From the NCBI RefSeq assembly GCF_000143415.4, contig NW_003314312.1, forward strand, positions 1,251,262 through 1,315,261: a stretch of DNA of 64,000 nucleotides, given 5' to 3'. This stretch comes from Selaginella moellendorffii (lineage: Eukaryota; Plantae; Lycopodiophyta). The notes under the pieces were generated by a model, which was not told where the DNA came from, did no database searches, and saw only the letters and a program-made list of their open reading frames with translations. The position numbers and the translations under genes were made by a program. Below, piece by piece: positions 488-57,926 of the stretch; within the stretch, counting starts at the first letter, position 1, and every line of letters begins with the position of its first letter.

Positions 488-2332
488 TGTTATGGTAAGG
501 AACTGAACCTACCCTAGGGCTCAAAATGGAACGGCGGCACAATGGAGCTTTTGAGGTAGCTCGGGGGTGGTTGGGTGGTGAGGAACCTCAAGAGGAGGTG
601 TGGAATAGTTTAAGAAGACTAGATCTTTATCTTTTTGCCCTGGATCATAACATTGGTATCAGAGGGAGGTTGGTTACGATGGCCAACCAAGCTAAACGCT
701 AGAATCCTATTGTCGATGGTGGTGCTGATGATGGTGCCGATGGAGCTGCGGAGGTTTGGACCATTCAAGATGTTGTTCATGAGTTGCGAGCCCTTAACTG
801 AAATCAGCAAGAGATGCAAGATGAAATGCATGGCATGATGGATACCATGTGTGAGCATGTTGAGGCACTCAAGGCTGGATATGGTAGCACTCCAAGTAAG
901 CCTTCCTTGATATATCGACTCAAGATTCCAACTTTTTTCAATGATGGTGGTGTGAACGAGTGTTTCACTTGGCTAGCCAATGTGAAGAAGTTTTTGGTTG
1001 CTAAAGGAACTCTATATGCAAATGCTTTAGTGGCTATTCTAATGGTTTTGTGTGATAGGGGTCTTCAGTGGTGGAATTGACTTGAGAGTCCCGTGTTGCG
1101 GATAAAAAGCCACCAATGTCTACCATAAATGAGTTTGAGGCTACTTTTCATCTATGTTTTGCCCCTCATTACGACCTGGAGAATGCTCATACAGAACTTT
1201 AAAATTTTCAGCAAGGAAAAATAACACCTGGGAACTATATTGAGAAGCTTATTCACTTGATTAGTTGTGTTCTCATAAAGGATCTAGATCAGAAAAAGTC
1301 CTACTTCATTGATGGCCTTCATAGTGAAAGTATGCGGCAACACTTACATCATTCTCAGTCTACAAAGAGTTTGGAGGAGCTTTTTGATGCAACTAGTCAA
1401 CTTGACAATGACAAGCACAAATCTCATAAGCATTCAAGAAGTCCTTCTGTCAAGAATTTTCATGATGATCATCATGGACATAAGGATGGAAACAAGCATC
1501 ACAAGCTGAAGTCTGTGGTGGTTATTTTGGATGCAAAGGGGTCAAAGAAGTAGAAGTTCTTTATGAAGAATTATAGATAGGGTTGTCATAATTGCGGCAA
1601 GTTTGGACACTATAAGACTAATTGTCTACAGCTGAAGAACAAATAGCAAGGCAAGAAGAATGGCCAATCTTCTACTTACGGTAAGTTACATATTAAAAAG
1701 TTGCAAATTTTGTAGTGTGAGGACGATGGGGATGACCATTCTGGTCGGAAGAAGAGGCTTTCGATCATTTCTCATCAACTCAATTATGTTTGAAACGAGA
1801 TGGAGCTCGAGGACACTCATGAATCAACTTTAATGTTGGAGGGCGTGTTTCGTGGCGGTCCAGTGTGGATTTTACTAGATAGCGGGAGTAATGACAACTT
1901 TGTTTCGGCAAAGTTTATTGTGGAGCATGGTTTGGTGACACGAGGAGTTCTTCCATATATAGTGGAAGGTGTAGCTACCTCTGCTTAGCATTTTGATGCT
2001 TATGTAGTGGGGCTGGAAGTGTTGGTTTGCTGAACGTGTATGTACATTCCCCATGTCCCAATGGGACTAATACAAAAACTAAGTGTGCCGCCCTCTCATT
2101 GAGCTACTCTACATGATCGTCATATGTCGCAGCTAGACCTAGTCCTAGAGTAGAAGTGGACGTGGTCATCTCAAGTGAATCATGTTGATGTCCAAGTCTC
2201 CTCCACGAGCTAACCTTAGAACAGAGTCTAGAGGGCACCACTGCCAGCAAATCTCACCACCTCCCAATCTGCCGAAGCATGGGAGCCACTTGGATCTCCA
2301 CTCCTCGAGCTGCCTTGGTTTCGCCCGCTCTT

Positions 2333-4340
2333 TCAGGATGGTGTAGTGAAGACGCACCACTGCAAGAGTGAGTCTCCACCACGTTGCCACCACTGCTGAT
2401 ATTCTCGCTTGTTGCCCATCAAAGCAACAATGATTCCGTGCCTCCTAGAGTGCCTGCACTCCTGTTGCCCTCCAAATGGACCAGCACTCATGGCCCATTG
2501 CCTCCCAGATGGACATCCCAACTTCAGCCCCTGTCGCGTCCCACCAGATTCGCATGTTCCATTTGTGTCATTCATAGCAACGAATACGCCTCCAAGCTGG
2601 ACCAATGGCTGGACCTCTAGCTCCCTCGAACCAGTGGAGGATATCCCCACACCGAGCCTCGAACTCTGGAATGTCTCCGAGTTCCTACGTCGCCTTGAAG
2701 ATCTGTCGCCATACTTCTCTCGCCACGTCACATTCCCATAGTGCATGTCACACTGTCTCCAGCTCGCCGCACTCCTTGCATCATCGGCATGCTTCTTCCT
2801 GGAACCACTGTCCTACCAGCAACCCGTTATTTGCCACCAACCAAGAGGTGGCCTTGACTTTCTCCTGTACCGGTAGTTTCCAGAACGCAAGTGTGTTGCC
2901 CACCACCTGATTTGCTTTAACTCCTTGCTCGATCCATTTCTTCCAGAGCTTGGGGATCTCCTCTCTGGCCTCCTCCTTGCTGGTCAAGAGACCATCCCTT
3001 GCTTCTTTGATGCCAAAGGAGAAGAAGCTCCTCACTCCTTGTTTCCATGCTGCGGGGTCCCAATCCAGATCCTCGATGAGCTGCTGTCGCCACCATATGA
3101 GAATGCCATTCCCCTCTAGTGTGGCCAACGATTGAACCACCACTGATTGCTTCAGAGCCTGTCGTATTACTCGAATCCTGCCCTTGACTTCATCATCCAT
3201 CACCATTGTTCATCCCCTGCTAGCAGCAGCATGTCGCCTCTCAAGACCCGAAAAGGATGCTCGACATTTTCGTCTGGAGACACAACGAACCACACCTCCA
3301 CATCTCTGTCCTCCCAAGCTGGTGTTGGGGCCGTAAACACCCATGTCCAGGCCCCCAAGCTGACTAGTTCCCTATCTGGCTCCACGTCCCATTGCAGAGC
3401 CACAAAGTCTCCAGGTTTAAGACAACACCTAGGCCAAAGCAGCCCCTTCTTCGCCTCACTCACTGCTTTGATAATGCGAAGAAGATCAAGGTGGACTTTC
3501 CTCCACCATCCCGGGTTAAAGACCTGCATATGTCTCGTAGTTTTCCTCCTGTCCTTGTCCAAAACCCGCACTAGTTGCTTGAGAGTCCAGAAGTCTGCGC
3601 TATGTAGCTTTCTCCAGATTGTGTAGTGGTCCTCTCTGCCCAGTGTCCTGTCATCCAGCTTGAAGAGGTCATTGAAGAATAGGGGCTGGTTCAACCAGTC
3701 CTCTGCTTGCCTTGACAAATCCCTACTGACTAGAAACGCGCTCCATAACCTGAGAAACCCCTGGACCAGAGTGCCCCCCTTGACTTCTTGCTTCGGCCCC
3801 TCGGCAAAGAGCCAATGTGGATCCTCCTCCCACGGTCTTGCAGTGTTGTGCTTGGGCCGGATTGCCAACAAGTTCTGCCTAAACATAAGTCTCCAAGGTT
3901 GGTTACTTGGTTAAAGGCCCATGAGGAGGATTTTGTACTGTAGCACCTTCGCCATATCGCTTGGATTGATTACTCCAAGTCCTCCCAAGACTCACGAATG
4001 TGCTGTAGATTGCCATGTGACCTTGGCCATGCTCCTCCCTGTGACTAGTGCGCCCCGCCACAAAAACTGACAAACCATCATGCGTACCTTTCTAAGAGTG
4101 CGTTCTGGGACAAGCCAGATGGAGAGGTGGTACCAAATGCTGGGCAGAATGATGCTCCTGGCTACTACCACTCTCACTGGCAAGTCGAGTTTCCGGGGAG
4201 CCCACTTCTAGATTGACGTTCGTACCTGTTAGAGCAAGGTGTCATCCTGGAGTGCTGCATTGAACCAAGTACCAACCTAAATCCCTAGGTACCTGGCGTC
4301 CTCTCCTGGTTTGAGCCACTAGAAGCCGATGCTCTGTCCC
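2333..4340 (-). pseudogene. LINE ORF2 C-terminal part
   Basis: ARYLGI, RVVVARSIILPSIWY, QFLWRG...AKVTW, then a C-terminal Cys-containing region; the reading frame joins 16561 once the DNA transposon and one TSD are removed. Confidence 0.85.
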
Positions 4341-4771
4341 AAGCTCTATTTCGTTAAAGTGGGAATTGTCATTATCCCACTTGTAAAATAAGGTTTCCAA
4401 ACCTTTATATAGTATATAAATATAACAAAATTCAACTGCATTGAGGCACATGCCATTTTATTTTAAACAAGGAAATGTCTACTCAATCACTTCTCACTGC
4501 TTCACCTCTCTCTTCTCCTTGTCATCGTCGTCCAATTTCTTTCCATCCTTTTAATATTGGCTCAGTTGCTCCGAGTCTAGGTGGAGCCCAAGTCCCCATT
4601 CAATCTTTACTTTCCCCTTATTAATAAAACAACTTCGTAGACTTCCAATAACATGCTGTAACACTTCTAGTATAATGCAAATCCTCTCAAAGAATTGTCT
4701 TTTAATATTAATACAATGGCATGGAACCCCATGCCATAATAAGTTACATTTTTAAATAAATACATGCCATC

Positions 4772-7700
4772 TCAGACTGTTATTTTTTGCCTCCAACGCC
4801 TATACAATAATCTTGGAATTTCATCACTCTCCACACTATCAGGATTTAAACCCAATAGTAATGCCATCTCTTCTCTAATACGTCCACGCTCATGTTCAGT
4901 GGTCGAAGAACCCATCCGATTGAGCAGATTATGGAGATGCGGATAGTGCTTGGCTAGACAATATACATGCCATAAATGATGACTGGTGTCTGTCCGATCA
5001 AATGGCTTCTGATATACCGTTCCATCTGCCATTTGGTTGATTTCTGCAGCCACCTCCTGGACTGGCCGGTTCTCTATCACCATCGCTTCAAGCCGTTTTG
5101 CAAGGTCCCCCAGAACATACGGTTTCTTCTCCCTAGTTTCCATACTGCAAGAGATGGGGTGCACTGCATATGTGTGCGTGTTCGCTGCAGTTTTAATCGG
5201 CGAGTCATCGATGATGAGGATTTCACTTGACCTAGCAGTCCGGTTCATCACTACAGCCTCTGCCTTGACGAAGATGGGCTTGCTACCCCTCACATGGACC
5301 ATAGTCAAGCAATCCTCCTGTGTTGGGAGAAAGTCAAATGGTAATATTACTCGCGTCTGATCGTGCATCATCTGTAGCAACGTTAATGCATTGTGGCGCA
5401 TCATGGATGTCCAAACTCCCAATTGCAAATTGAACCCGGCCCTCTGTTTTAAGTGTCGCATGGTCATTATTAGATCCCGCAGTTTCTCCCGTGTGATTAA
5501 TGTGAATCTGTCTCTTTTGACCAACTTGCGACCGCAGGCTTTGGAGGGTGCAGTGACATTCGAGGACGAGCCACGCTCATGGGAGAAAAGGACACCGTTC
5601 AGATCAAAAACGATACAGTACTTTCGCCGTGACTCTGAAATGAAATGCGTTAGCATAAAAAATGGTACAAGTCAATTTTACCATCTACAATATTAGCGAA
5701 TGGTGCTCCCGATGGTCGTTCAGAGGGTTTTGGTCGAGGAAACGTGAAGGGCGGAAATACTCTCCTCTGCAATGTGGGGTCAATCGCATCCGATGGCGTG
5801 TGGGCACATGCCATTTCAGCTGTAGACTCTGGTACAACTGGCTCAACAGTGGCATGGGGTGGTTCCGATGGCGTGTGATCACACGCCATTTCAGCTGGTG
5901 CCTCCGTTGGCAAAGTGGACATGACCGAACAGGCAGTAGGGGCGGTGTAGGGAGGTTCCAACGGCGCGTAGTCAGACGATTGGGCACACGTTGGAAATGA
6001 GGATACGACCGGCTCGGCGGCTGGGGCGGCCTCATGCGGGTCCAATGGCGCCTGGTCACCGTCAGTTGGATACGTGGACAAGATTGACTCAGTGGTATGG
6101 GCAGCATCAAGTGGAGCGTGGTCAGCTTGCTTGGCGTTGATATGGATAGTAGCCTCCACCAGCTCTGATGACTCTTGCAGGCAAGTAGAGTCCACTGGCG
6201 GATCCATATGCATGTCCAAATATCTCCCTTCGATTGAGATGGTATCCTCCCGTGCTACTAAAAACAAACTCATTAGCACATTGAATCGACTATACTGTAT
6301 TTACCATCAACTGCTATTGAGGAACTAGGACCGATATCACTTGGGTGCACTGCTGATTCTGAAGGATTGGACATACGTTTCGACCCTTGCTTGGCACTAT
6401 CCTTCCTCGACACTAAAGGCTAGAGTTTGTATCTTAATTCAACTGAATAATCTCTACTTACCATTTCTTCTGCGACCTACATGGACAATGTTAGAAATGG
6501 TAAAAGGTTAGGAATGGATGTACTATTATTTACCTGATGGTTTGTCTTGTATGACCTTCCTCCGCTGCTCTTTGGCCACCTCAGGCTGGCCATCATCGTC
6601 ATCATCGTCATCGTCGTTATTGTGATCGTCACCATTGTGAGGACCATCCAAGTCCTCTTCGTCCTCCTCTTCTTCGTCCTCCTCTTCTTCGTCCTCCTCT
6701 TCGTCCTTCTGCTCTTCCTGCTCATTATCTTTCTCTGGCTCCTCATCCCCCTCTTGCATTTCTTCCATAGGCTGCTCAGGCTGGATTGCTTGTTTTTCCA
6801 GGACCATCTTGGAAAAATCATCTGGCCGAGTCTCCATCTCAAAATACAAGACATCCATAGCCTGTTTTAGTGCGTGACCTAGGACCGTATCCTCACCCGA
6901 CTGTCTTAACATGGTTTCTGCACGTTCTTGCACCCTTCGAAGACGACGAGATGAGAAAAACGTGGCCCTGACTTGAAAAGCATCCCTCATCCATTGTACC
7001 TCTCCATTGAGATTGGGGAAGGGGAGTCCGCCATAGGAATCTGAGTCAGAAGGTGGTGACTGGCTCCTTTCACTCAGCCCTTGATCTGCAATGAATGGCA
7101 TGAGCACACACGCCATAACCGCGAGGCATTACCTATCATCTTTTCGTTGCCCTTCTTCCTTTTCGAATCAAACGCCTCTGATCCCGACGACTGTCCAACG
7201 TGCTTTCGCTTTTTATGACCACTGTCAGTTTGAGCTTGGCTGGTGCTTGCCTGTTTTGCCTTTGAAGAAGTGTCTCCTGCAAGGAATGGCATGAGACCAC
7301 ACGCCATTGCAAATATAATTTGTACCTCCTTTTTTCCTATTGCTTGTCTGTTTGTCCTTCTTCGACGCGCCACCAGTGCGCTTTTCAGTCCTCGTGTCTG
7401 AATATTCACAACGATCTATAATCAAAATGGCGTGAGGCCTCACGTGACCTTACCTTGTGCAGGTTGTGACCTCGGCCTAACATCAGTAGCTGTTAACGCC
7501 GTTTCAGCATCTGGGGGTGGCCACGCTCCTGCATACAGAGCTTGTGAGATAACATTTAAACTTAAAGTGCGTACTCACCAGGTTCGTAGAGAAGATACTG
7601 TTTTTCTTTGGCAACTGTAATTATATGCTCCATTGAAGTCACCTCTTCAATGGAGTTTGTCACCGCAACACACGGGACACCCTTGAGTAGTGCGGCTCGA

Positions 7701-10362
7701 AAGAATAGTCCGCCGCAGTTGTACTCGACAACGCATTTGCCCTTGGAGTCACCCGCTATTGCGTTGAAGACCCAGCTGAGCATTTCCCATGCTGCACCTG
7801 GAGCTTTCTTTGGATTCGAAAGCTCCATAGCCGTCTTCAGTTCCTCAGGCACGGGTAAATTGACCTCCCTCAGATCAATTCGATCGGCTTTGTTGAACGA
7901 AGCTGGGAAGTCACTCCAGTCCCACTCTGCTGCAGGACCAATAACAAGGGCGAGTGTGAAGATGCGGACATTCGTCGGTATCTTCTTCTTAGCCATTATC
8001 CCATGGATCTCCCGCATCTCCTTGCCTTTCAACCGAGCCTTCACCTCGTTCAAGGCCTTCCAGAACTTGTGATAGGATTCGGAGTCGTAGATCATATAGT
8101 GGACTGAAGATTCCACCTCCGCAAGTCCCACCATTAAGTCAATGATGGAGCTGACTTCGTCTGCATGAGTGATCTCCTCGTTTGTGAAGTCCATCACACA
8201 AAAGATGTTCTTGACCTGCTCATCTCCGCGGGAAACGATGCTCCTCCACCTTTGATCCTCATCCGAATTCACGTATACCCGGTAAGGTTCTTGATAGGCC
8301 TCTGCTGCGGGGTCGAGCTGTTTCTGAAGCCGGCGGTCGACATCCCTCTTAATGAAATTTGGATACTGATCCAACTTCTCAGCTTTACTTTTCGTGGCAT
8401 CCCGCAGCAGATCGATGAACTTGGGGGCCCCCTTCACGTACTCGTCGATGTCTTCATTTGACAAGTCCAGCTCTTCCATCATCTCTTGCGTGGTGTCGAT
8501 GCTCACCCTCGCCACGGCCACTTGCTCGAAGATCCAATCCTTCAATAGCGCACGAGCTCTCAGAGTCGTGCACAAGTCCTCGTATGTCACAATATGGCCG
8601 GGAGTCATTTTGGTCTTGTTGAAGACTACCTCACCAAGTAGAAGAGCATTAGCCACTGTCAGAAGGTCGTCGTCGTCTAGAGACCGCGAGAAACGCAAGG
8701 CGTTGAGCTTCAAATCATTGGGCTTCCGGCCGTCCTCCACACCCATTGAGTTTAGCAACTCCCCGTCATGGTACCTCCTTAGCACATCTACCCATTTGTC
8801 AAAAACAACTTTTGTCGCGTGTAGAATGTTATGGATGCTGAGTGTGTCATTGACCCCCAGTGTTTTCGAGAGAAGACTCGAGAATTCCTGCAATGGAAAT
8901 GGCGTGAGGCCACATGCTATGCCACATGCAACGAGGCTTACCTGCCAGGCGCTAGTTGCTAGTGCACGTCCTTGTCCTGGTTTTTGTGGCTTCTTCAGTT
9001 GAACCCAGAGCTTCCGTGTTCGTGCCAATGTCTCGTGCAGACCCGATTTGTAGCACGTTTCTTGCTTGACATTCTGCGCGTGGGAGATGTATATGATAGA
9101 TCGGAGGGGCGAGTTGCCTTTTATCAGGCGGACAACTCTTGTCTTGAAGACTTTCTTCACCTCCTCGCCCACCATAATATCCACAACTATCTGTTGCATC
9201 GCCAAGCTAGAATGCTGCCCGGAGACGGCATAGAACCGGATGTTCTGATCGTCCAACACCTTCCTATTGATCAAGTCTGGAAACCTTGTCTCGCCCTTCA
9301 TTGTTCGGTAGTAGGGGATCACGTCTGCGATGTCGGGTGTTATTGGACTTGCCAGCATCTTCTGCTTCAGTTTCTCCACCCACTCATCAGATACTAGCCT
9401 GTGGTTGTATTTGCTTTGGATCTCGATACGGCTCACGTCGATTGTATATACTTTGTTGGAATAGTAACAAGTACTATTATCTGCGACGATTTTTGCTGCC
9501 TCTTCTTGCTCTTTCTGCTCTTTGCGGCTCTTCTTTTTGGTGGGTGTAGTGTTCGAACCCGAGGCAATGGCATCACCGAGTAGCTTCTTTTTTGGAGCAG
9601 CAGAGTCGGACGTCGGCTTGAGCTTGACCACCCTTTTCTGCTTCGGGGTAGTTTCCAGATCGACCCCCTTCCCCTTCGCTTCGCAAACTGGAGGCACTCT
9701 CAACGGCTCAATGTTGGAATATAGTTTTTGAACATCGCCGTAGGTGAGGTCCGTGGATTCCATGTGATCTTCATAGACCCGCAGCGTCTTTGAAATTGTG
9801 GGCCTCCTGGACAACCTCTCCCTAGCTCCCTCTAGGAATTCCTCATAGCCGCTGCCCCCCTCCGGGAAGCCGCTAGGATGTGCAAGGTGGATCTTGAAGG
9901 CGGACGCTGTCTCTACCACAAGTGCCAGTCCATATTCTTGCATGGAACTGCATGGAGTGTCTGTCACTTGGATGAGGATCCCCATGCATTCTTTTCTCCC
10001 ACCATCTGTGTTGTACAGCATCAGATCCTCGCCTTCCATCCCGAAAGTCCAACTGGTGAGCTCCTCCCCCTTCTCTGCATCCACATTGACAGTGGCTGGA
10101 AGAAGAACGCAATTCCTCGCCTGTTCAAAAATGCACAACAATTAGAGCTAACAGATGAAAAGCTAGCAGCTGGAAATAACGTGAGGCCACACGCCATTCA
10201 CCACTGCATCAGATGTCTTGAGGCTGCATCCTAAGATGGCGTGAGGCTACACGCCATCTGTAACCGGACTGCACTCGAGAGCCCAATCGGTGCATGCCAA
10301 TGTTGCTACTGAATGGCATGTGGCCTCATGCCATTTTCTACTTCGTCTAAAAGACTTACCAT
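4772..10362 (-). CDS. Transposon cargo gene, ~1640 aa: ParB/Srx-like + degenerate beta-class amino-MTase fold + acidic linker + FCP1/SCP-like HAD domain
   Basis: Ten GT-AG introns (10121-10359, 8888-8941, 7529-7578, 7416-7453, 7277-7325, 7086-7132, 6477-6533, 6413-6461, 6258-6304, 5635-5681) join the track ORFs into one stop-free frame of 4914 nt. ParB motif YNHRLVS...FYAVSGQHSSLA; HAD motifs IVFDLNGVL, VWTS, IIDDSPIK. Start codon uncertain. Confidence 0.8.
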
Positions 10363-11721
10363 TTGAAGCCGAATGGAGGCCGTGACAATCGAGGCCGGAC
10401 TCGCTGGCGAATGTGCACTGTGTGTGCAGCGGATCGTAGCAGCAAGGCTACTCTGCCACTTACAGTTGGAGAGTGGTGCTGAAATCTCCCGGGACGCCAA
10501 GTGGGCTGCGTGTGGGTGGTGGAGTGGGCGGCGGAGTTGGCGGCGAAGTTACAAACTGGGTGTGTCTTGAAATGGACGCCGATGCACACGAGCGCGATGC
10601 GAGCGCGAGTGTGATGCAAGCGCGAGTGGACGCCAATGCACACGAGAAACCTGTAGAGAAGTGAGCGTGATCGCGAGTGGGAGCGCGATGCGAGCGGGAG
10701 CGCGAGTGTGATGCGAGCGCGAGCGCGAGTGTGCGAGCGCGAGTACAAAGCAAAATGCAAAACCTAACCTCACACGCGCGAAATGTCACAACGGTTGGTA
10801 ATCCCGCCACGTCATCATTCCTCGGACTTGGGCGCCACCATTAATTTCTGGATTGCCGCGCGCATGCAAGCACGCAAAATCCAAAAGAAATCCGCAACGT
10901 CATCATTCCTCGGACTGCATGCACGCGAAATCCAAAAGAAAGATCATGATTGGGATATCATTTAATACCCTCGCTATATTTATACCATGCATGATTGGAT
11001 ATTCCAAAGCATCTTGTATTTCCAAAAATGGCAGATGTTCAGCTAAATAAAGAAATTCTATCTGTTTCTATTTTTCTCTCAAATCAATATTATAGCGTGT
11101 GGGCTCATGCAATTTTGAACCAAAGAAACCCAAAAAACGTTGGACCCAAAATATTTTGAAAAAACCCAAAAAACCCTAAACATTTTAAACCCAAAAATCC
11201 AGGCGTCCTGTGGCGTTATTCCTTGAATGGCGTGTGGGCGCATGCCATTTTCAGGGGCACATAGGAGTATATTCCTAGGATATTCTGACACGCGCGAGAT
11301 TTTTTTGAGTTTTCTGGAGATCCAACCGTTAGATCGCAACTAGATTTTACAGAATGGTATACAATGTCTTTCTTGATGACCCTGCAAAGAAGCATCTCAA
11401 TCGGACACCACATGAGACCACACGAGCCTTACAATGTTTCAGGGGCATTTGCCATAGATCCGACCGTTATTTTGCTCCAAGATTTCACAGTTTGGTGTGC
11501 ATTGACCTTTCCATCGAAACTGCAAAGGGACATCACAATCAGATGCGGGATCACAAGAAACTAACTTCACTAACTCTGGTTTCACCAAGATCTACGTAAG
11601 GAGTTATGAAATGAAAGGACCCTCTCTATTGAAATGTGTTTATGGTCCTAGGGGCATTGTGACATATCAAAGGATTTTGCATCAAGTTCTGTATTTGCAT
11701 GTTTATCAAGCTACTGAATTG

Positions 11722-11755
11722 CTAAACCCTAAACCCTAAACCCTAAACCCTAAAC
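11722..11755 (+). repeat. Interstitial plant telomeric repeat (CCCTAAA), about 4 units / telo-box array
   Basis: ctaaaccctaaaccctaaaccctaaaccctaaac; two units shorter in copy 2 (56453-56472). Confidence 0.85.
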
Positions 11756-13051
11756 ATGTGGCAAATGCTGCGTGAAGAAAGATGCCATTTCTGGGCAAAT
11801 GCTGTAAGAGGCAGATGCCGAGCAGATGTATCTCAGGCTAGCGAAGGGGACGAACGAAAGCTAGCTATAAACATGACGGGATGCAAATAGATTACTAGGC
11901 TGGTCCTACGAAAATCAAAAACCATAATTGAAAACATTGAAAATGCAAAAAGAAAGGTTTATAATATTTTTGAATTTTAGGCAACCAAAGGAATGTAAGT
12001 AGGGCATGTGTTTGTAAGTTTAAAAATGCCTCAACCACTTAAATTCCCAAGTAAATAAAGCTGTTTCTATTTTTGGTACAGGTAAACTTTATAGCGTGTG
12101 GGCTCATGCAATTTTGAACCCAAAAATGCACCAAAAAATGCTCGACTAGCATTATTCTTTGAATGGCGTGTGGCCTTATGTCGAGCATTATTCTTTGAAT
12201 GGCGTGTGGCCTTATATTGCCATAAATGGACGTACACACACAGCGTAATTATTCCTTTACACGGCGAATAATCTTGGCGCGGATCGCTGACATGGCATGG
12301 CAAAGTTCGAATCACTGACATGGCACAGCTGGATCGAGGCAAGGACATGATGTGACAAAGTTCAACCTCCGACAGCAAAGTCTAGAAGCTACTCAGTTTG
12401 AAATTTGTCAGAGGAATCATAAGATCTGGTTTGTCAGAGGATTTGATGTGACGTTCAAGCGTGTGTTATTTTTGAATTCTCGAACTCATTCCTAGGTCTA
12501 TCATTTTTGTGCGCCGTGTTCTTGGTTCCGCTGAGCGCAGTGAGCGCTGCTTGTGTAAGCGGCGTTGTGGGCTGTGGTTTATGCGTCTACGAGCGGTTGC
12601 GGCATTGCGAGCGCCATTGCGAGCGGCAGTTTATGCGAGTGGCAGTTTGTGCGAGCGGCGCTACGAGCAGTTGCGGTGTTGCGAGCGGCGCTACGAGTAG
12701 TTGCGGTGTTGCGAGCGGCACTGTCTTTGGTGTGGCTACCGCTTCCTCTTGATATTCGGCACTTGTGCTTCCTGGTATGTTCACCATGGAATGGCTTAGG
12801 ACCACATTTAGAAATGGCATGAGGCCACATGCCATCTTGGGCCCTTGCAATTTCATGGCTAGCGTATTGTCATGTATGTTTTTACTTGCCTGCAGCTGTG
12901 TGTATATCAAGATGGCATGAGGCCTCATGCCATCTTTGGCCCCTGCTAGCCTATTGCCATATTCCTTTGCCTTGCTGCAATTGTATATATTTTTGTATGG
13001 GTGACTAGTCACGCACACAAAAATATATACAGTTGCAGCAAGGCAAAAGGA

Positions 13052-13275
13052 NNNNNNNNNNNNNNNNNNNNNNNNNNNNNNNNNNNNNNNNNNNNNNNNN
13101 NNNNNNNNNNNNNNNNNNNNNNNNNNNNNNNNNNNNNNNNNNNNNNNNNNNNNNNNNNNNNNNNNNNNNNNNNNNNNNNNNNNNNNNNNNNNNNNNNNNN
13201 NNNNNNNNNNNNNNNNNNNNNNNNNNNNNNNNNNNNNNNNNNNNNNNNNNNNNNNNNNNNNNNNNNNNNNNNNNN
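13052..13275. other. Assembly gap (224 N)
   Basis: N run beginning inside the right arm of a long inverted repeat. Confidence 1.
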
Positions 13276-15427
13276 TATGGAGAGGCAATCTTCAAGAGGT
13301 TTGTCGAGACATGTAGCGAGCAGCAACCACATAAAACCCGCCTCTTGGAAGATGGAACACGAGACACCCAACGAGTTCTCCCTTCCATGTATACCAAGGG
13401 GGCCATATTGGAAGATGTGAATCGGGAACTCCAGAGTAATGGCTACAGGAAGCTGAGCCAATCTAGATTTAGTAGATTGTGGAGCAACAGGTTCAGGGAT
13501 GTGAGTATAGGAAAGTACTCCAGCTTTTCAAAGTGTGACGAGTGCACTGCTATCAAAATGGCTTTGTCGAAGAATTCTTGCAGCGCTCAAGAGCGAGAGA
13601 CGTTGGTTAGAAGGCGGCTCGACCACAACATCGAGCAGAGAAGCTGCAGGACTGCATATTATCATAACAGGATTCTCTCCATGGAGAGACCTGACTCTTA
13701 CCTCTGCATCATCCACGACAAAATGGACCAGAAAAAGACGTGCTTACCTCGACTCAATCCTGCCCCCAAGGCAATCTCTTCATCCATGCAGCTGCCTGTG
13801 TCTCTGTTTGGCATAATCGCTCATGGGCATGGTGCCCAGAACTATGGGAACTTCTTTGTACCTCTATGGGGTGGCGGGGGTGCAAACATGATGATTGCGT
13901 CCCTAGCAAAACACTTAAGGTCTCTGCAAAGTGCGCAGACTGAGCTGAACGGCCAACCCTTGCATAAGGCCCTTGTCGATCGAACCCCATACAGGGTTCA
14001 GCTGGAGGAGGAGCAAAGGCTTGCAGTATCGCGTGGGGCCCCATGCCATCCCAGTGAATATGTTGGCCGTCAGATTGTAGGGTTATCACGTGAGGCCTCA
14101 TGCCATTCCGACGAGGCTGGTCGCCCGGTGAATGCACAGCCTCATCCAAACGAAGCAGAATCTCAAGGAAGTTCTTGCGGCCGATGTGGCCTTCCACCCC
14201 ATCTTCTGCTCCAAACAGACAATGCTGGCAGTGAGAACAAAAACATGTACGTCTTCGCGTACTTGGCGATGCTTGTTGCCAAAGGCATATTTGAAACAGT
14301 TACACTTGGCTTTCTCATGGTTGGGCACACTCATGAAGACGTCGATGCCATGTTCAGTCACCTGGCAGAGTCCCTCCGGCGATCCAATGTCCTCACCCTC
14401 CCACAACTCTACGATGAATTCCAAAATTGCATCAAAGGCACTGTTGAAGCTGCACTTCTGACAGAGGTTCCAGACTTTAAGGGGTTTGTAAGAGGCTACA
14501 TCAGGGATGGATCCGAAACGCTGATTGGCCACTCCAAGCCTCTTCAGTTTCATTTCAGCATGTGTGACGGTGCTCCAGTGATGAGGTACAAGATGAGAGA
14601 ATGGGACACAGTGTGGCTGCCAGTGGACGGCATTGAACTCTTCAAGAGAGATCCCATAACTGGGGAACCTATGATTCCTCAGGGTTCCCCACGGCCGATG
14701 CACCCGGATGGACTCAAAGACCAGGAAAGTATAGTGGCCGGGATTAGACAGCATATTGCCTTCTGGAAGAGGGGGTTGGTGTTTGGTGGAGAATCCTATT
14801 TTCAGAGGTGCAAGCCTTTGCTCGAATACTGGGAGAAGATTATATCTGCTATCCAAAATGGGCCGGTTGTATATGAAGAATTGGAAGAGTCCTTTTGGCC
14901 AGAACCCAGAGCACCAGATAGTAGCGGAACAATGTCCTCTGGAAATGCAGTGACAGATAATGATGTTGAGGATCACTATTGTGGGCCGAGGAACAAGAAG
15001 CCGGATTCAGCATTCAATCCAGTACAGGTCTGCAAAGGAATGGTCGTGCTTGTCAGACCCAGTAATAAAAAACAAATGATATGGGTGGGGCGCTGCATCA
15101 CTGATGCAGAGGAGGACGCGGAAACTAACTCCTTCAATGTAACTGTGGAGTGGTTCAAGCCAAGTTCCGGATATACGAAGGATTGCCTAGAAAAGAGATG
15201 GGTGCTGAATCCAAGGGATCCCAGCATGAGCATATCGGTGGATAATGTTGTGCATGGTTGGATGCGGAAGCAGAGTGCCACCATCACCTTGCCAGACCAT
15301 GCAAGAGATGCAGCAAGAGCATTCATAACTCGGGTTCAAGGTGAGATTCATTAATATTCCTTTACAAAGTTTCTAATGTATTTTATTTCAAGGTGAACAA
15401 TCCGAATCTGAATCAAAGGAGGCTTGA
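13276..15427 (+). CDS. DDE transposase (Sola-like / DUF7869-type); 5' part lost in the N-gap
   Basis: FSKCDEC, IIHDKMDQ, LQTDNAGSENKN and FLMVGHTHEDVDAMFS motifs; C-terminal beta-barrel-like domain (VVLVRP...IWVGRC...VEWF); probable last intron 15341-15392 giving a stop at 15425-15427. Confidence 0.88.
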
Positions 15428-16560
15428 TATAGTGTGTGAGGTAAAACAAAGATGATGTGACATATGCATTTACCAATCACACGTGCATAAATCTAATAAT
15501 ATGGCGTGTGGCCCATATTAATGGCACATAAACCCATATTGTGGGCTTACGTGCTTTATGTACCATCATTCCCTTGCAGCGTGTGTGTTGGTTTCCTTTT
15601 ATAACACAACGAACTCCATATTTTAGGGTGAAGAGCGTTCTCATGGCAAGCACAAAATCTGTAAGTGAGGCAGAAAAGGAGACGGAGAAGGAGATAGGTG
15701 AAGATGTAGAATATATAAGTCTTCCAAACTCCCCGTACTATACTCCAAATGATCATTTTTCTGAACAAACGGCAACATTAACAACTATCGAGAACGCCCC
15801 AGTAACGTCAGAGACAACAATCCAAAGCAAAACAACTGACCCGGAGAAGGATGATAGTACCGCTGAGAGTACCAAAAAGGAGGTGTCCACTAGCGCTTAG
15901 GCTTATAATGGCGTGTGCCCTCATGCCATTTACTTGATCACCAAATACCTTTTTCCCTTTGCACTAGTATATCTTAATACCGGTCTGAGAAATAGAATGG
16001 CATGTGCCCTCAGGCCTTTTACTAAATCACCTTTGAAAGAAATGCAAGCCTCTATGTCGTAAAAAAAAGGTACTAGAGAAATTCCTTAATAATATGAATG
16101 TTATTTAGTTTCATGAAAATACACTAAGGGTCAAATGAGTTAAATGACTTCTCCAGACTAGCAATGCCTCTTGCTACACCTTCACAATTAGATTCGTTAG
16201 AAAAAGATAACATTGAATAATATCTAAATGTTCTCACCATTAAGTTATATGTCTGGCTAATAGGAATGATGTTCATCTTGGAAAGCTCACCACACGCTCA
16301 ATGAACAAACAAATAGTGTGTGCGCGCATGCCATCGCTCTTCTTTAGCTTCAGATTCGGCTTGTTCACCTTGACAATGAGATTTATTATACAACTAGATG
16401 GACTCAGTCTGGACATAAGGTCACCGCGCTAGTCACCATGCCCCAGATATGTCTAGCCCCTGGACAAAAAACATATAATTTCACGCCATTTTCAAATACT
16501 TGAAAATTTGTACCTAGTCCCATTTTACTGAATAAATCCCACTTTAACGAAATAGAGCTT

Positions 16561-16913
16561 TCCCCAAGATTCAATGCCTGGCTGCCCCCAATTTATGCCC
16601 ACTGATTTGTTCCAATTAATTGTTGCGCTAGCCGCGAGGTTGAAAGTCTCCAATGCCTTCTTAGCTGCATCCAGGTTCTCCTTAGTTGCGAGTAGAAACA
16701 AGGCAGTGTCGTCTGCAAGTGCTCCATCAAGGAGTTCTTGAGTCACCCTTGTGGTTCCCGGAAGTTGCTATCTTACAGCTGGTAGGGTGAGTCCTTTAAT
16801 GTGCCCACCTTCCGCTAGAAATGTGCCCAGGGCCTCAGCCACAATCAGAAAAAGATAGGGTGCTAGTGGACACCCTTGGCGTACCGAACGTCCCAGCTGA
16901 AAACTCATTCCCG
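16561..16913 (-). pseudogene. LINE RT middle segment
   Basis: VRQGCPLAPYLF, LADDTALF, INWNKS. Confidence 0.9.
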
Positions 16914-16999
16914 TGTAAGGAACCAACTCGCCGAGGTGTCGTAGGCTAAAGGAACCCCGAAAGCATGACCAAAATGACAAAGAGTTCATCGGATGGGAC

Positions 17000-17265
17000 C
17001 AAGTCGAAGATCGAGTCCAAGACCGACTCTAGGACCGAGTTCGAGATAGAGTCCGGAATCGAGTCCAAGACTGACTCGGGGACCGAGTTCGAGTCCGAGT
17101 TCGAGACCGAGTTCGAGACGGAGTCCGAGATCCGAAATCGGGTCCGAGACCGAGTCCAAGGTCGAGTCCGAGGTCGGGTCCGAGATCAGGTCCAAGATTG
17201 AGTCCGAGATCGAGTCCGAGACCGAATCCGAAATCGGGTCCGAGATCAAGCCAGAGACTAAGTCC
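17000..17265. repeat. LTR-internal hexamer-based tandem repeat (GAGTCC/GAGACC/GAGATC)
   Basis: Visible directly; also at 23370-23650, 38155-38372 and 44157-44400. Confidence 0.9.
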
Positions 17266-18110
17266 AAATACTAATATGGGTCAAGGGGTGAAAGCCCAAA
17301 GCGTGCGTCTCCCAGGGGGGGGGGGGGCTGCAGGGGGTTCCAAAAGTATAGTAGGGATAGTGAGGTCCAGGAACCAGTTTTGAAGGGACTCTCCAGTGGG
17401 GCTTCTAAACTGACTTGAGGTTGAGACTGGGACCGACGGGCCTTGGGTGGGAGTGAGCACGGACTTGGTTGGTGCCGGAGGGGCCATCCAAGGAAGTGCT
17501 CAAGAGCAGCTCCCACTCCCGAAAGGGAAACTGATTGCGGTGCTCCCGGCTCATGTGGAGTGGTGCCCCACTTGAGTACCATGCGGCTCATTGGTCCTCG
17601 CCCTGCCTAGGGGCTTGGGCCTTCCTTCGGGATGGAAGTGGGGGGGTAGAGGTACCCATACCGGGCCGCTAGGCCACGGTGTTTCGCCCCGGTGCCCCGA
17701 AGCAAGTGTTGCACTCAAGACTTGGGATTTAGAGGGTCCCATGATCAAGTCTTGTGGTACCAAGGGATATTAGGAACCTGGAAGCTTGGTGTGCTTGGCT
17801 GCTTGTGCTTGCGGGGAGTGTAGCCGAACCTTAAGTCCAGTCTAACCCGAGGAGGGGGATTGGGGGTGATTTGGGAATCCGTGGATGGATGGCTAACACT
17901 CCGTTGCTCGTGCAGTGAGTAGCTGAGACCAAGTAGAAGCTGGTACCATAGGCAAGAACCTTGGCAAGGGAACTTAGCAAAAGCCAAGGCAATGTTGGAC
18001 GGATAGACGAGGTAAGCTAGCAAATTGGAAAGGAAAAATTTATGGCTTACAATTTGGTATCGGAGCCTTTTCCTCAGTTCTAGCGAAGGATAGAGGCGGA
18101 TTGTTGGGAG

Positions 18111-21100
18111 ATGGCAAGGGCAGGGCGTAAGCGAACCCAGGCGGAGACGGAACCTCCGCCGGAGCTGGAGCCTCCGGTCGAACAAGAGGCTATGGATGAG
18201 GAATCCTTGCATGAGGAGGACTCCAGTGAGGAAACTTCCAAACAGGAGTCCGGTGGCGAGGTTCGGTCGTCCAAGGCTCGATTGGACGTGCTAGAAGGAC
18301 AATTGGCACCGACCAATGCCCTGCTAGAGACTGTCGTACACAAGTTAAAGCATGACGAGAAGCGGAAGAAAAAGTGAAAGACTGCGGATGCTGGCAGCGC
18401 AGAAGGTGCGGACCCTTTGGCAGGGACTGAGGCAAAACCAGACAAGGTCGAACAGACCGAAGTGGAATCAGTCCCTCAGGCAGTTCCCAAGTACAAACCA
18501 AAGCCCCCACTGGTGTTCAAGGGAGTGAACGACTATAAAGTTGTGGAGGATTGGTTTTACGATATGGAGGACTACTTCCGAGCGTTGCGATTACCGAGCT
18601 CGGAGAAGGTCCCATGTGCAAAACCATACTTGGCAGATAATGCCAAGTCTTGGTGGAGAACAACGGAGGCCAACGAAGGACCGGTGGCCACCTGGGACAT
18701 GATGAAGGCGAGGATCCGCACAACATACGTTCCTCCGAATGCCACTCTGCATCTGAGAGATGAGCTAAGTAGGCTGAAGCAGACTGGAACCATCCAGGAA
18801 TATGTGAATGGGTTCATGGCAAAGAGGATACTTGTCACGGACATGGGGGATATGGATGCGTTCCATGCCTTTATATCAGGTTTGCAAACCTGGGCTCGCG
18901 GTGAAGTGATGCGCTGGAACCCGACCAACTACAAGGAAGCGTTGGATGCGGCCATCAAGGTGCATTTCAACGATAACCTGCGAAAGGGGAACACGACGGG
19001 GTCGGGATCCACGTTTAGCAAAGGGGCTAAACCAAGGGGAACGTATAGCAGAGGGAAATTCAAGAAGAGTTTCTCTAAGAATGAGTCCTCGGGGTTCCGA
19101 AAAGGCAAATCTGGTGGCCAGCGAGCGAGTACGTGGGGAAGTCAAGCAAAAAGAGACAAACCCACGGATAAAAAGGTCAAGTCATATAGCAGCGTGGGAA
19201 ACAACGTATGCTATAACTGCGGTGAAGCGGGACACTTCTCGAGGGAATGTCCCTACCCGAAGAAGGCCAGAGCCAATATGGCCATCAAATCGGGTGAAGT
19301 CCAAACTGAGGTATGTGATCCAGTCCTTAACTCAAAGTTGCTCATTACACAAGCAACTTTGGTAGAGAGTCGTTCGCGACATCTACTAGCCCTCCGAGGG
19401 AAGCTCGGAGGTAGCTTTGTTAAGATCCTTATTGACACGGGTGTTTCGGATAATTTTGTGGCTGCAGACATAGTCCGGCAAGCCGGACTAACGGTGCAGC
19501 GGCTAGGCGAACCAAAGACTATAGAGTTTGTTCAAGGTAGCCAAAGCACCGATGAGGTACTTTGACAAGCGAGAGTCGAAGTAGGGACATGGAAAGTAGA
19601 CATGGATTTCACCATGTTGGATATGGCGGGATTTGACGTGATCTTCGGAATGGATTGGTTCAATCAGTTCGTGGTAGCCCTACATGGACAAGGTAGGAAC
19701 CTTGTGGTACTGGTGAATGCCTAAGGAAGAAGATCTAGGGTGGAGGCCCAGGATCTAAAGGTAGGGCAATGCAAGGCCAAAGAATCCTGCTTAAACCTGG
19801 TGTCCACGAGAGGACAACTCACTAAAGGAACTAAGGCAGCCTTTTTGTGCTTACTCTCGGTGAAGAGTGACAAAAAGATAGGAACGGAAGAAGTACCTTT
19901 AGTGATCCAGCAGGTGTTGGACCAATTCCAGGATACCATGCCAGAGGAGCTACCGGCGGGGTTGCCCCCCGCATGACCAATAGAACATAAGATTGAGCTG
20001 GTCGAGGGTGCTGAGGCGGTGGTTCGTCCACCCTATCGTTTGAATGAAAAAGAACTTGTGGAGCTCAAACGCCAACTAGAGGAGTTGGTGGACAAAGGGT
20101 ATGTTAGGTTGAGCAAATCGCCGTATAGGGCACCGGTGCTATTTGTGAAAAAGAAAGATGGGTCTATATGCATGTGCATAGACTACCGATTGCTCAACAA
20201 GTATACAAAGAAGAACAAGTACCCTTTGCCAAGGATTGAGGACCTGTTCGATAGGTTGGGAAAGGCAAAATACTTCTCGAGAATTGACCTAAGTTCAGGA
20301 TACTACCAGATCAGGGTAGCAGAGGAAGATGTCGAGAAGACAACCTATCGAACGAGGTATGGGAGCTTTGAGTTTCTGGTGATGCCCTTCGGACTATGCA
20401 ATGCGCCGGCAACGTTTTCGGCGTTGATGAACCATATCTTTGTACCCTATCTGGATCACTTTGTGGTCGTCTATATTGACGACATCCTGATCTATAGCGA
20501 AACACTAGAGGAGCATGCCAAACACTTGACGAAGGTGTTTGAGAAACTAAGGGAACACCAGCTGTATGCTAAAGAGAGCAAATGTGACTTTGCTCAACAA
20601 GAGGTAAAGTTTCTCGGGCATGTGGTGGGCAAGGATGGGCTCAAGGTGGACCCTGAGAAGGTCTAAGCGATCCAGGATTGGGAGCGACCATCGAATGTAC
20701 ATGAGTTAAGGGCATTCTTGGGGCTATGCAACTACTATCGAAAGTTTATCAGACACTATTCGAGAGTAGCCCTGCCCTTAACGGACCAAACGGGAAAAGG
20801 GAAGATGGTATGGACAGCGGAATGCGAGGCGGCATTCATCCACCTCAAAGGGAAGTTGAGGAAGGCCCCCGTGTTGGCATTACCAGACTTTGGTAAGGAC
20901 TTTGAGGTAGAAACAGATGCTTCAGACTTTGCGTTGGGCGCAGTTTTGAAGCAGGACAACCATCCAGTAGCATTCTTCTCGAAGAAGTTGGACAAGGCTC
21001 AACGGAAGTGGCCTGCCCATGAGAAGGAATTGTTTGCAGTGGTCAAGGCGCTCAAGGAGTGGCGACACTACCTTGGGAGACACTTCAAAGTTTACACGGA

Positions 21101-22883
21101 CAATGTGGCAACGAAACACTTCTTGTCACAGCCCGACCTAAGGGGAAAACAAGGTCGGTGGGCCAATGCTTTGGCCGAGTTTGATTGCGAGATCCTGTAC
21201 AAGCCTGGGAAGAGCAACATCGTGGCAGATGCGCTAAGTAGAAAAGCAAGCTTGAAGTTGGCGATATCTAGCATGACAGAAACCTTTTGGGATGATGTGC
21301 GGACTGCATACGAGAACGATGGTCTAGCACAAGAAGTGTTGCTGAGGAATCTAGAGGCACGGGAAGCTCACCAGAGAGGTGAGCTGCCAACGGAAGAGAA
21401 AACGGGCTATGCGGAACGCAACGGACTCATATATTACAAGCAAACGAGGGTGTATGTTCCAGAAGGGGAACTAAGGAAGGTAGCCTTGGAAGAGTGTCAT
21501 GACGGACCTCTCGCGGGACACGGCGGAGTGCCCAAGACGATGGGCTTACTCAAAAGGAAGTATCACTGGCCAGATATGGCTAAGGATGTCCAAGACTATG
21601 TAAAGACATGTCCAACATGTCAGCAGGTCAAAGCTGTGACAAAGGCTAGTGGGGGCTTGTTGCAAAGCATCCCCATTCCAGATCATCCGTGGAAATGTCT
21701 CACGATGGACTTCATCACGGGACTACCCCCAAGCGAGGGGTTCGATGTGATATTCGTGGTGGTGGACCGATTTTCAAAGATGGCACATTTCATACCCACC
21801 ACAACGGAAGTGGATGCGGAAGGTGTGGCGAAGCTGTTCTTCGAACAAGTGGTTCGAGTGCGGGGAAGGCCGGAAGAGATTATCTCAGATCGAGATAAGA
21901 TCTTCACCAGTAGGTTCTGGAGGACACTTCTAGAACAGTATCGCACCAAGTTGAAATTCAGCACAGCCTATCACCCACAAACAGGTAATGGGTATTAAGT
22001 CAAGATTGATGGCACTAACACTTCTTGACAGACGGACAAACGGAAAAGGTGAATAGGCAGCTGGAGGATTATTTGCGATGCTATGTCTCAGGAGACCAGA
22101 CCAACTGGGTAAGTCATTTGGGACTTGCGGAAATGTGTTATAACAACTCACCACATTCGAGCATCGGGGTGAGTCCATGGGAAGTCATCAATGGGCGAGC
22201 TATTGAAGGTCCTGTGGAACTCGGCGTGGCCGAGTATCATGGTGAGTTACCTGCAGTGGAGGCATTCACGGCGGAAAGACTCAACATTTGGAATCTAGTG
22301 AGGGATTCCTTGGAACGGGCTCAACAAAGGCAAACTAAGTATGCGAACCAAAAGTGTCGGGATGTGGAGTTCCAAGCTGGGGAGAAGGTGTGGCTGAACA
22401 CCAAGAACCTCAGGCTACCAAGTGGGATCAGCCGGAAGTTGACCCAAAGGTAAAAATGCATGTGTTCCTGTAAATGAATTAATCTTGAGTTCCTTAAGCA
22501 GGTTCGCGGGGCCTTACGAGATTGAGGCTCGAATCGGTAAAGTGGCTTACCGTCTCCGACTTCCTCGAGAGATGGGGAAGATGCATCCCGTGTTCCACGT
22601 GAACTTACTCAAGCCGTATTTTGAGGATCCGCTTCGCAAGGACCAAGTAAGACCTTTACCTGAGGTTATCCAAGGGGAGGAGGAATACGAAGTCGAGGCC
22701 ATCCTCAATGCGCGCAAGAGCAAGTGACAAGGACGCGAGGGGAGAGAGTTCCATGTGAAGTGGAAAGGATTTCCACACTGCGAAGCAACATGGGAACCGG
22801 AGGAGAACCTAGCGAACGCGCGAGATCTAGTGGAGGAATTTCTGCATGGCAGAACTCTATGTACTTATGCAAAGTTCAATTAA
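18111..22883 (+). pseudogene. Single gag-pol frame with two introns in the integrase; several nonsense codons consistent with C-to-T changes
   Basis: CYNCGEAGHFSREC, LIDTG, YIDD, TDAS, HHCC, MDFI, GPY and chromodomain (YEVEAIL...HVKWKGF...TWEPEENL). All ORFs to 21998 share one frame; removing 21985-22031 and 22450-22501 keeps it. Confidence 0.92.
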
Positions 22884-43270: not shown

Positions 43271-43396
43271 ATTTGTAGATGATATCTTAGACAAGCTTGG
43301 TGAAACAAAAGTGTCTACTAAGATTGATCTAAGGAGTGGATATCTTCAGATTGCAATGGAGGACACATTTATTTCCAAGATAACAGTTAATATAAG

Positions 43397-48948: not shown

Positions 48949-49390
48949 AAGCTCTATTTCGTTAAAGTGGGAATTGTCATTATCCCACTTGTAAAATAAG
49001 GTTTCCAAACCTTTATATAGTATATAAATATAACAAAATTCAACTGCATTGAGGCACATGCCATTTTATTTTAAACAAGGAAATGTCTACTCAATCACTT
49101 CTCCTCCCCCTGCCACTGCTTCACCTCTCTCTTCTCCTTGTCATCGTCGTCCAATTTCTTTCCATCCTTTTAATATTGGCTCAGTTGCTCCGAGTCTAGG
49201 TGGAGCCCAAGTCCCCATTCAATCTTTACTTTCCCCTTATTAATAAAACAACTTCGCAGACTTCCAATAACATGCTGTAACACTTCTAGTATAATGCAAA
49301 TCCTCTCAAAGAATTGTCTTTTAATATTAATACAATGGCATGGAACCCTATGCCATAATAAGTTACATTTTTAAATAAATACATGCCATC

Positions 49391-57738: not shown

Positions 57739-57926
57739 TAGTGGTACCACTAATGGCATGAGGGCTTATGCCAATTTTGTGAATGCGAAATTTCACGTGG
57801 GTGTCAATAGCATGTTTGAATAATGGCATGTGGCCTCATGCTATTGAGGTTGTTTGGTATGTTATAATTTAGGCCATTCTCCAATCATTTTTTGTATGGT
57901 CTTAACTTCTTTTCTGCACTTTCAGA

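Follow-up and report, generated by a model that had tools for sequence, protein, structure and literature searches.

The 64,000-nucleotide stretch of the Selaginella moellendorffii genome analyzed here (contig NW_003314312.1, positions 1,251,262 to 1,315,261 of the forward strand; hereafter the window, in whose own coordinates all positions are given) contains at 4341-16560 a DNA transposon with two oppositely transcribed genes. We regard it as probable that this is a ~13.2-kb Sola1-type element which has long kept a partner gene of ParB fold beside its transposase, and in which a series of short palindromes would serve as docking sites for one of the element's own proteins. The element is mobile and carries the gene pair, the partner protein possesses a ParB/Srx fold in a confident structural model, the palindrome is private to the element, and the two-gene layout is conserved in liverworts. 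Whether the partner protein or the transposase is the putative palindrome binder we judge to be about evenly balanced.

Element ends and mobility

The limits of the element and the position of a second copy are as follows:

4337-4340, no strand: left copy of the target site duplication (TSD), TCCC, read directly and identical to 16561-16564
4341-4364, plus strand: left terminal inverted repeat (TIR), 24 bp, exact match, with 0 expected in shuffles
16537-16560, minus strand: right TIR, exact match to the left TIR
16561-16564, no strand: right TSD copy, TCCC, read directly
48949-58631, plus strand: second, broken copy of the element, with the same first base as copy 1 and a different flank

The 24-mer AAGCTCTATTTCGTTAAAGTGGGA has exactly three exact occurrences in the window, where chance predicts none: the two inward-facing TIRs and 48949-48972 (+), the start of copy 2, whose left flank is TTAT, unlike copy 1. 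A matching 4-bp duplication accompanies these ends only; no alternative choice of ends yields one. Excision of 4341-16564 leaves a decayed minus-strand reverse transcriptase of a long interspersed nuclear element (LINE) in one frame across the joint. The rejoined frame reads RQGCPLAPYLF, ADDTALF, INWNKS and INWNKSVGINWGQPGIESWG up to the joint, which falls between WG and QSIGF, and then QSIGF, a stop, WLKPGEDARYLGI and LGGLGV; the spacing from INWNKS to YLGI is normal. Protein collinearity thus allows the empty site to be reconstructed, and an uninterrupted paralogue of the insertion site was not present within the window. The LINE frame closes when one TCCC copy is removed with the element. 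We rejected a chance origin of the duplication.

A preliminary description of this DNA, made from the letters alone, had reported the exact 24-bp TIRs, the 4-bp TSD, a reconstructable empty site and a second copy starting at the same base in a different host; each was recovered here, and together they uphold its view of a single mobile unit. The element is a real, recently mobile cut-and-paste transposon.

The assembly gap and the true length of the element

The assembled element is interrupted between its two genes:

12912-13051, no strand: left arm and center of an inverted repeat of ~190 bp, from forward/reverse self-matches
13052-13275, no strand: assembly gap (N), bridged by contig L001 and copy 2

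The left edge of the gap lies 45 bp beyond the center of the near-perfect inverted repeat, which is likely the cause of the assembly break. In copy 2 the hairpin is complete at 57547-57738, with a folding free energy of -91.8 kcal/mol (z -18.3), and it is built of two sites of the palindrome described below in inverted order. Such a break raises the question of an assembly chimera, in which a partner-gene part and a transposase part would be joined by the N gap alone; the match of copy 2 to copy 1 ends exactly at the gap start (13051/57687), and no part of 13276-16560 recurs in the window. The matching TIRs, the TCCC duplication and the LINE frame that closes across the flanks all speak against a chimera, and the inverted repeat explains the break. 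Copy 2 extends past the left edge of the gap, up to 58631, and contig L001, a 3.6-kb deletion derivative of the same transposon family from an independent public run, links copy-2 sequence from beyond the hairpin to 13276 onward. L001 contains, in order, 57732-57935, 58178-58629, 287 bp absent from the window, 13276-14418 and 16427-16560 with the right TIR, and its 630-aa product is encoded by a single frame, of which codons 4-154 are copy-2 sequence (58179-58631) and codon 250 on is 13276 onward. Both sides of the gap therefore belong together, and we rejected the chimera as very improbable.

Nominally 224 bp, the gap hides ~1.0-1.2 kb, which takes in what is left of the hairpin, DNA upstream and the first 249 transposase codons, so that the element measures ~13.2 kb, not 12.2 kb. 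The earlier figure of at least 12.2 kb stands for the element as assembled, the full length being larger by the gap-hidden DNA. For annotation, the gap is a warning, as it conceals ~1 kb along with the start of the transposase gene. Separately, 242 bp of copy 2 lying just upstream of the transposase start (57936-58177) are absent from L001; this may be an indel that distinguishes the copies, or else an additional exon upstream.

The transposase and its classification

Rightward of the gap lies the transposase gene:

13276-15354, plus strand: transposase, C-terminal 692 codons in an open frame (13276-15351), Pfam DUF7869 (PF25273, E 2e-42)
14191-14601, plus strand: DUF7869 domain (PF25273)

DUF7869 is the only assignment that Pfam makes for the protein. 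Its 104 homologues, all of them DUF7869 proteins, come from liverwort (Riccia), amphioxus, mussel and many other assemblies. Aligning them brings out three conserved acidic motifs, HDKMDQ, QTDNAGSENKN (QxDNxxxENKN in the alignment) and GHTHEDVD (GHTHEDxD), and a conserved Cys-rich CCxxxCCQ motif at the N-terminus. The defining traits of Sola elements are a DDD transposase and a 4-bp duplication, and their reported TIRs range from 11 to 1124 bp (PMC10741241); the present element has a 4-bp TSD, and its exact 24-bp TIRs fall inside that range. The order of the transposase motifs, compared by eye, is the same as in the transposase of Sola1-1_Ec32 from Ectocarpus, which its authors classed as Sola1 via blastp to Repbase Sola1-1_PPa (PMC12477816). 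The element thus probably belongs to the Sola1 group and encodes a DUF7869-type DDD/E transposase. Literature searches on DUF7869, or on Sola elements with ParB in Selaginella, returned nothing.

The partner gene and its predicted ParB/Srx-fold domain

On the opposite strand, the left part of the element is occupied by a large gene, confirming the divergent pair of a transposase and a multi-exon gene proposed in the preliminary description:

7565-10141, minus strand: main frame of the partner (cargo) gene, 859 codons, intact in copy 1 and with 2 stops in copy 2
9053-9463, minus strand: ParB/Srx-fold domain (residues 227-363 of the open reading frame, ORF) with the signature FYAVSGQHS, from an AlphaFold model with a predicted local distance difference test (pLDDT) score of 80-93
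7565-8269, minus strand: possible degenerate N6/N4 DNA-methylase-like region, weak evidence
5650-7409, minus strand: proline-rich, acidic and basic linker ORFs (5650-6279, 6526-7116, 7074-7409), from the ORF list, with predicted exon joins
4772-5656, minus strand: ORF or exon (294-codon frame) with a NIF/FCP1-like HAD phosphatase-like domain (PF03031)

The linker ORFs, in which Pfam found no family, are probably exons of the same leftward gene. Sequence searches with the partner protein were nearly silent. Neither the 859-aa ORF nor its residues 560-859 matched anything in a word-indexed protein search, a PDB sequence search with the ORF returned nothing meaningful, and Pfam and NCBIfam found no family in the ParB-like part. 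An exhaustive search of 1.8 billion representatives gave 16 weak matches (best 6e-11), which share a domain with the signature F-x-A-I-S-G-Q-H-S.

Structure prediction was more telling. The AlphaFold model spans residues 190-620 of the ORF and is confident for 227-363 alone (model residues 38-174). The structural matches of this domain are led by PadC (Z 10.0, root mean square deviation 2.9, 97 aligned), KorB (Z 9.6) and the N-terminal ParB domain of pNOB8 (Z 8.4), followed by SerK (Z 8.2) and sulfiredoxin (Srx; Z 7.8), and the top eight all belong to the ParB/Srx superfamily; Foldseek places the domain against Noc/ParB at E 1e-4 to 1e-3. The partner gene product is hence confidently modeled as carrying a ParB/Srx-fold domain, in keeping with the ParB-like cargo protein that had been suggested. 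A captured single-copy host gene was considered and rejected, as almost no partner homologues lie outside such elements. In 4 of 5 sampled liverwort loci the gene lies opposite the same transposase, which speaks against the host-gene capture that the preliminary description had named as one of its refuting cases. The cargo homologues P0106, P0120 and P0113 lie on contigs shorter than 2.2 kb, too short to show any neighboring genes.

Two further parts of the partner protein are suggested by sequence comparison. For the methylase-like region the support is weak: language-model features place the partner protein near phage ParB_N+N6_N4_Mtase proteins (0.78), and the Riccia homologue scores against PF01555 with E 1.2e-3 and 19.3 bits, below the cut-off of 26.7. 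Neither Pfam nor NCBIfam recognized a family in this part of the window's protein. The catalytic motif IV, (D/N/S)PP(Y/F/W), is absent from the candidate position both here and in the Riccia homologue, with DFTN where DPPY is expected (DLTH in Riccia, in a weak alignment) and YNCGG in place of FxGxG. The NIF/FCP1-like domain lies just above its threshold (E 6.3e-5, 23.1 bits against a cut-off of 21.8). Its first HAD motif is DLNGV and not DxDx(T/V), the second aspartate being replaced, and Riccia has DVEGL; a NIF exon or gene occupies the same position in the Riccia relatives. If real, both domains look like pseudo-enzymes.

A private palindrome distributed over the element

The element is dotted with a 22-bp palindrome:

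4435-16334, no strand: 22 copy-1 palindromes, starting at 4435, 4716, 5793, 5868, 7095, 7286, 7427, 8899, 10176, 10236, 10313, 11092, 11227, 12091, 12163, 12814, 12912, 14028, 14085, 15908, 15997 and 16313
10142-13051, no strand: intergenic region of the divergent genes, up to the gap, with palindromes and three telo-boxes
7086-7132 (47 nt), 7277-7325 (49 nt), 7416-7453 (38 nt) and 8888-8941 (54 nt, in frame), minus strand: four mini-introns with palindrome, predicted from their sequence build

At up to 5 mismatches, the consensus ATGGCGTGnGGCCnCACGCCAT (also written ATGGCGTGAGGCCTCACGCCAT) has 42 matches in the window, against ~0.15 in shuffles. Copy 1 holds 22 and copy 2 holds 20, leaving 0 in the remaining ~42 kb. 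The claim that the element possesses palindromic sites of its own is therefore sound, as all 42 matches lie within the two copies; the exact form first given for them, ATGGCATG...CATGCCAT, requires correction. Many palindromes have decayed from CpG to TpG/CpA, and that form is the deaminated derivative of ATGGCGTGnGGCCnCACGCCAT. Sites occur within 100-400 bp of both ends, all through the DNA between the two genes, in the linker of the transposase (14028, 14085) and inside the partner gene. The ~3-kb control region described earlier does hold palindromes, telo-boxes and the hairpin, though its length is ~3.4 kb; the three telo-boxes are at 11171, 11724 and 11738, and the two element copies account for five of the window's six AAACCCTA/TAGGGTTT matches.

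Within the partner gene, four palindromes are embedded in predicted mini-introns that share one build: GT, 5-21 nt, the 22-bp palindrome, and a T-rich stretch ending in TTGCAG or TATAG. The one at 8888-8941 is in frame, with the ORF running on through it, and it falls in a part of the ORF that has no counterpart in most of the aligned homologues.

Recurrence of a unit made of the palindrome and a T-rich tail ending in TTGCAG, together with the construction of the 190-bp hairpin from two inverted sites, could indicate that the palindromes are not protein sites at all, being instead copies of a very small nested unit, of a mobile or intron-like kind, or DNA/RNA hairpins acting as a small-RNA source or as cruciforms. 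A free-living mini-element sits poorly with zero copies in ~42 kb of other window DNA, and the palindromes, though alike in size, differ from one related lineage to the next (see below), which argues for co-evolving recognition. We hold a non-protein role to be improbable.

Relatives in liverworts and other assemblies

The Riccia sorocarpa sample comprised five DUF7869 loci. At four of them (L002, L008, L009 and L010) a homologue of the partner gene lies upstream of the transposase on the opposite strand, with hidden Markov model E values of 1e-23 to 6e-59, and at one locus an annotated NIF gene adjoins the partner homologue. Palindromes of the same size and different sequence characterize the lineages: GCTTCGGGACGCGTCCCGAAGC at L002, GCTTCGCGA... 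at L008 and at the relative L011, and GTTATCGTCGnnnCGACGATAAC at the relative L004.

At L003, two neighboring DUF7869 transposase genes (895-2619, minus strand, and 14597-17762) each have a different palindrome directly upstream, GGTATCGTCGnnnCGACGATACC beside one and GTATCGGCGGnCCGCCGATAC beside the other. An opposite-strand 250-aa ORF that accompanies the first of these genes carries FMIINGQHS; hhalign aligns it to the family profile at the motif with E ~1e-3 and a probability of 22%, and it also scores with the DUF3723 and ParB_N clusters. By these sequence criteria L003, which at first looked cargo-less, carries a diverged ParB-like ORF bearing the GQHS signature. Another ORF at L003, of 314 aa, shows faint Ulp/C48-protease-like features. 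TIR searches at L003 and L004 turned up the palindromes alone and no element ends. As to the question whether cargo homologues always lie beside this transposase, they do so at four of five Riccia loci and, as the diverged ORF, at L003, and none was found at L011 or L004.

A proposed model for self-recognition and the candidate binders

Taken together, a working model for the element can be drawn. A DUF7869-type DDD/E transposase would move it by cut-and-paste, through the 24-bp inverted repeats and with 4-bp target duplications, while the lineage would have long kept a second, oppositely transcribed gene with ParB/Srx-fold, degenerate methylase-like and NIF/FCP1-like parts. The family-specific palindromes, spread from end to end, may be places where a dimer of one of the element-encoded proteins docks, and docking would let the element recognize its own DNA, either for assembly of the transposition complex or for marking or protection of its chromatin.

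One candidate for the docking protein is the ParB-like partner, which would bind the palindromes and then act on the element's chromatin by anti-silencing or self-marking, in the manner of VANC-VANDAL or ParB-parS. This is a possibility that we entertain tentatively. It is favored by the ParB/Srx fold, by the co-occurrence of partner gene and palindromes in the window and at L002, L008, L009 and L003, and by the spacing of the sites, which recur every ~0.06-1.8 kb over the whole element, even in mini-introns, a pattern more suited to coating or marking than to recognition of the ends. For algal elements this hypothesis is already in print. In opposition, the modeled part is the nucleoside triphosphate (NTP)-binding N-domain, which by itself is not a sequence reader (PMC12704722), L004 and L011 have palindromes and yielded no partner gene, and the partner bears no similarity to VANC.

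Alternatively, the palindromes may be internal or subterminal binding sites of the transposase, as in En/Spm, Ac and P elements, with the partner gene an unrelated accessory; this, too, we can put forward only as a doubtful proposal. A palindrome of its own accompanies the transposase in every DUF7869 lineage sampled, also at L004 and L011, which yielded no partner gene, and the two neighboring transposase genes of L003 each have a different one directly upstream. The conserved N-terminal CCxxxCCQ motif could read DNA, and there are sites within 100-400 bp of both ends. On the other hand, the palindrome is unlike the TIR, end recognition needs no sites deep in genes and introns, and the argument from cargo-less relatives is weakened by the diverged ParB-like ORF at L003 and the undefined boundaries of L004.

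Several results weigh against our overall account. The helix-turn-helix (HTH) of DNA-binding ParB proteins is not resolved, the model falling below pLDDT 60 past model residue 175, and the ParB arginine motif GERRxR is missing, the aligned position reading SGQHS here and ISGQHS in the homologues. The preliminary claim that a ParB-like protein binds the element's own palindromes accordingly goes too far, given that the fold of the N-domain alone is modeled and GQHS replaces the arginine motif. At L004 and L011, palindromes are present and no partner gene is detectable in the DNA at hand, in which the element limits were not found. As to the methylase-like part, the PF01555 profile did not match the window's partner protein even at E 10, a PDB profile search with the C-terminal alignment of the partner found no match, and an AlphaFold model of residues 600-859 from a 6-row alignment was unusable (pLDDT 45). 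The Sola1 assignment, a probable one, derives from the 4-bp TSD, the motif order and a comparison by eye with the Ectocarpus transposase. Finally, two RNA sequencing (RNA-seq) runs, ~12% of each of which was read, gave 5 and 0 reads and neither transcripts nor splice joints.

The most far-reaching version of the self-recognition model is one that we consider rather unlikely as a whole. In it, the partner protein, with its methylase-like and phosphatase-like pseudo-enzyme domains, would load on the private palindromes of land-plant Sola1 elements and mark or shield the element's chromatin, as a module co-evolved since before the split of liverworts and lycophytes. Its sites would be present at high density, some housed in purpose-built mini-introns, making it a eukaryotic, transposon-borne analogue of ParB-parS; to this part, too, we give little credence. 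An anti-silencing role of the partner protein would be pure analogy.

Decay and apparent silence of the two copies

Of the element, copy 2 retains a partner gene interrupted by stops, the DNA between the genes, the hairpin in full and codons 4-154 of the transposase; it ends at 58631, within the CCxxxCCQH motif of that protein. Between 48949-57687 and the corresponding 4341-13051 of copy 1 there are 158 substitutions in ~8.5 kb (1.9%), 121 of which are transitions and 53 in CpG context. Both copies are young, 1.9% apart, and are decaying by CpG deamination. The ratio of nonsynonymous to synonymous substitution rates (dN/dS) between them, 0.73 for the main partner ORF and ~0.47 pooled, is uninformative, because the changes are too few and mostly reflect decay after insertion. 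Judged by the two RNA-seq runs, both copies look silent; the 5 reads of one run map to 9857-10400, at the 5′ end and promoter side of the partner gene, and are too few to interpret.

The surrounding window

The whole window is a nest of transposons. Directly to the right of the element lies a long terminal repeat (LTR) retrotransposon, at 16914-24433, with LTRs at 16914-18051 and 23286-24433 (95.7% identity). On either side of it, at 16714-16914 and 24434-24634, the same 201 bp of host LINE sequence stand in direct orientation (97%). This duplication far exceeds the normal 5-bp target duplication and may have arisen by recombination or in the assembly. Three more stretches of the same retrotransposon-like family, in mixed orientation and 85-95% identical, lie at 18295-22185, 38760-43273 and 45185-48040. 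Tandem arrays with a 23-bp period are present at 59091-59473 and 63472-63991, and arrays with a 12-bp period lie within the LTRs (16949-17292 and 23345-23664).

Comparison with known systems

The VANDAL21 element of Arabidopsis encodes VANC, whose anti-silencing function has been shown experimentally. To our knowledge, recognition by a transposon-encoded protein of the transposon's own DNA is rare and has so far been proven for VANDAL/VANC only. Like VANDAL21, the present element is a DNA transposon with an extra protein and with short motifs accumulated in its own non-coding DNA; the two systems have no relation in sequence or fold. With bacterial ParB-parS it shares the ParB/Srx N-domain fold and a palindromic site, of ~16-22 bp, in several copies. 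Unlike the bacterial system, it has no ParA, no resolved HTH and no arginines of the CTP motif, and it spreads more than 20 sites over 12 kb of a eukaryotic transposon.

The closest counterpart is Sola1-1_Ec32 of Ectocarpus, a 21.5-kb Sola1 element with an opposite-strand gene whose product has both a ParB-like and an N4C/N6A DNA-methylase domain; in the proposal of its authors, proteins of this kind bind the transposon that encodes them and modify it epigenetically (Genome Biol 2025;26:320, PMC12477816). Both elements have 4-bp TSDs and a ParB-like accessory gene on the strand opposite the transposase, and the present one, too, is probably of Sola1 class. The algal element differs in its host, a brown alga, its 21.5-kb length, its 282-bp TIRs and its recognizable methylase domain, which is degenerate and unconfirmed in the present element, and the paper mentions neither a NIF-like domain nor a palindrome array (PMC12477816). 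The two-gene design and the self-binding hypothesis are thus already known, and the element cannot be called undescribed in that respect, as the preliminary description had it.

Plavaka (CACTA-like) elements of the red alga Bostrychia carry a ParB-domain gene, PAG3, beside inverted-repeat arrays (bioRxiv 10.1101/2025.02.11.637652). PAG3 likewise joins a ParB-homologous N-terminal domain to a putative DNA- or chromatin-modifying domain in the company of inverted repeats, with self-binding suggested by its authors, whereas the transposase belongs to a different superfamily, the partner domain is a 2-oxoglutarate (2OG) oxygenase, and the repeats form tandem arrays beside the gene and not sites dispersed into introns. 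ParB-methylase fusions linked to mobile elements are also found in phages, chlorophytes and chytrids (Iyer et al. 2015, PMC4738411; PNAS 2025, PMC12704722). The partner protein resembles these in the order of a ParB-type domain and then a possible, degenerate DNA methylase, in its mobile-element link and in its language-model features; the fusions differ in having detectable PF02195 and PF01555 domains and intact catalytic motifs.

Against this background, what is apparently new is the land-plant branch (lycophyte and liverwort), the added NIF-like part, the degenerate catalytic motifs, and a defined, dispersed and lineage-specific palindrome that reaches into predicted mini-introns, suggesting that binding-site-like palindromes can lodge there. 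The ParB-type partner gene emerges as a long-standing associate of Sola1 transposases, present in brown algae as well as in liverworts and lycophytes, and not as a captured host gene. The algal reports of 2025 raised the idea of a ParB accessory gene and gave no Sola1 sites; the present family adds a defined 22-bp site, a full site map, relatives with other sites and young copies, which make the published idea experimentally tractable.

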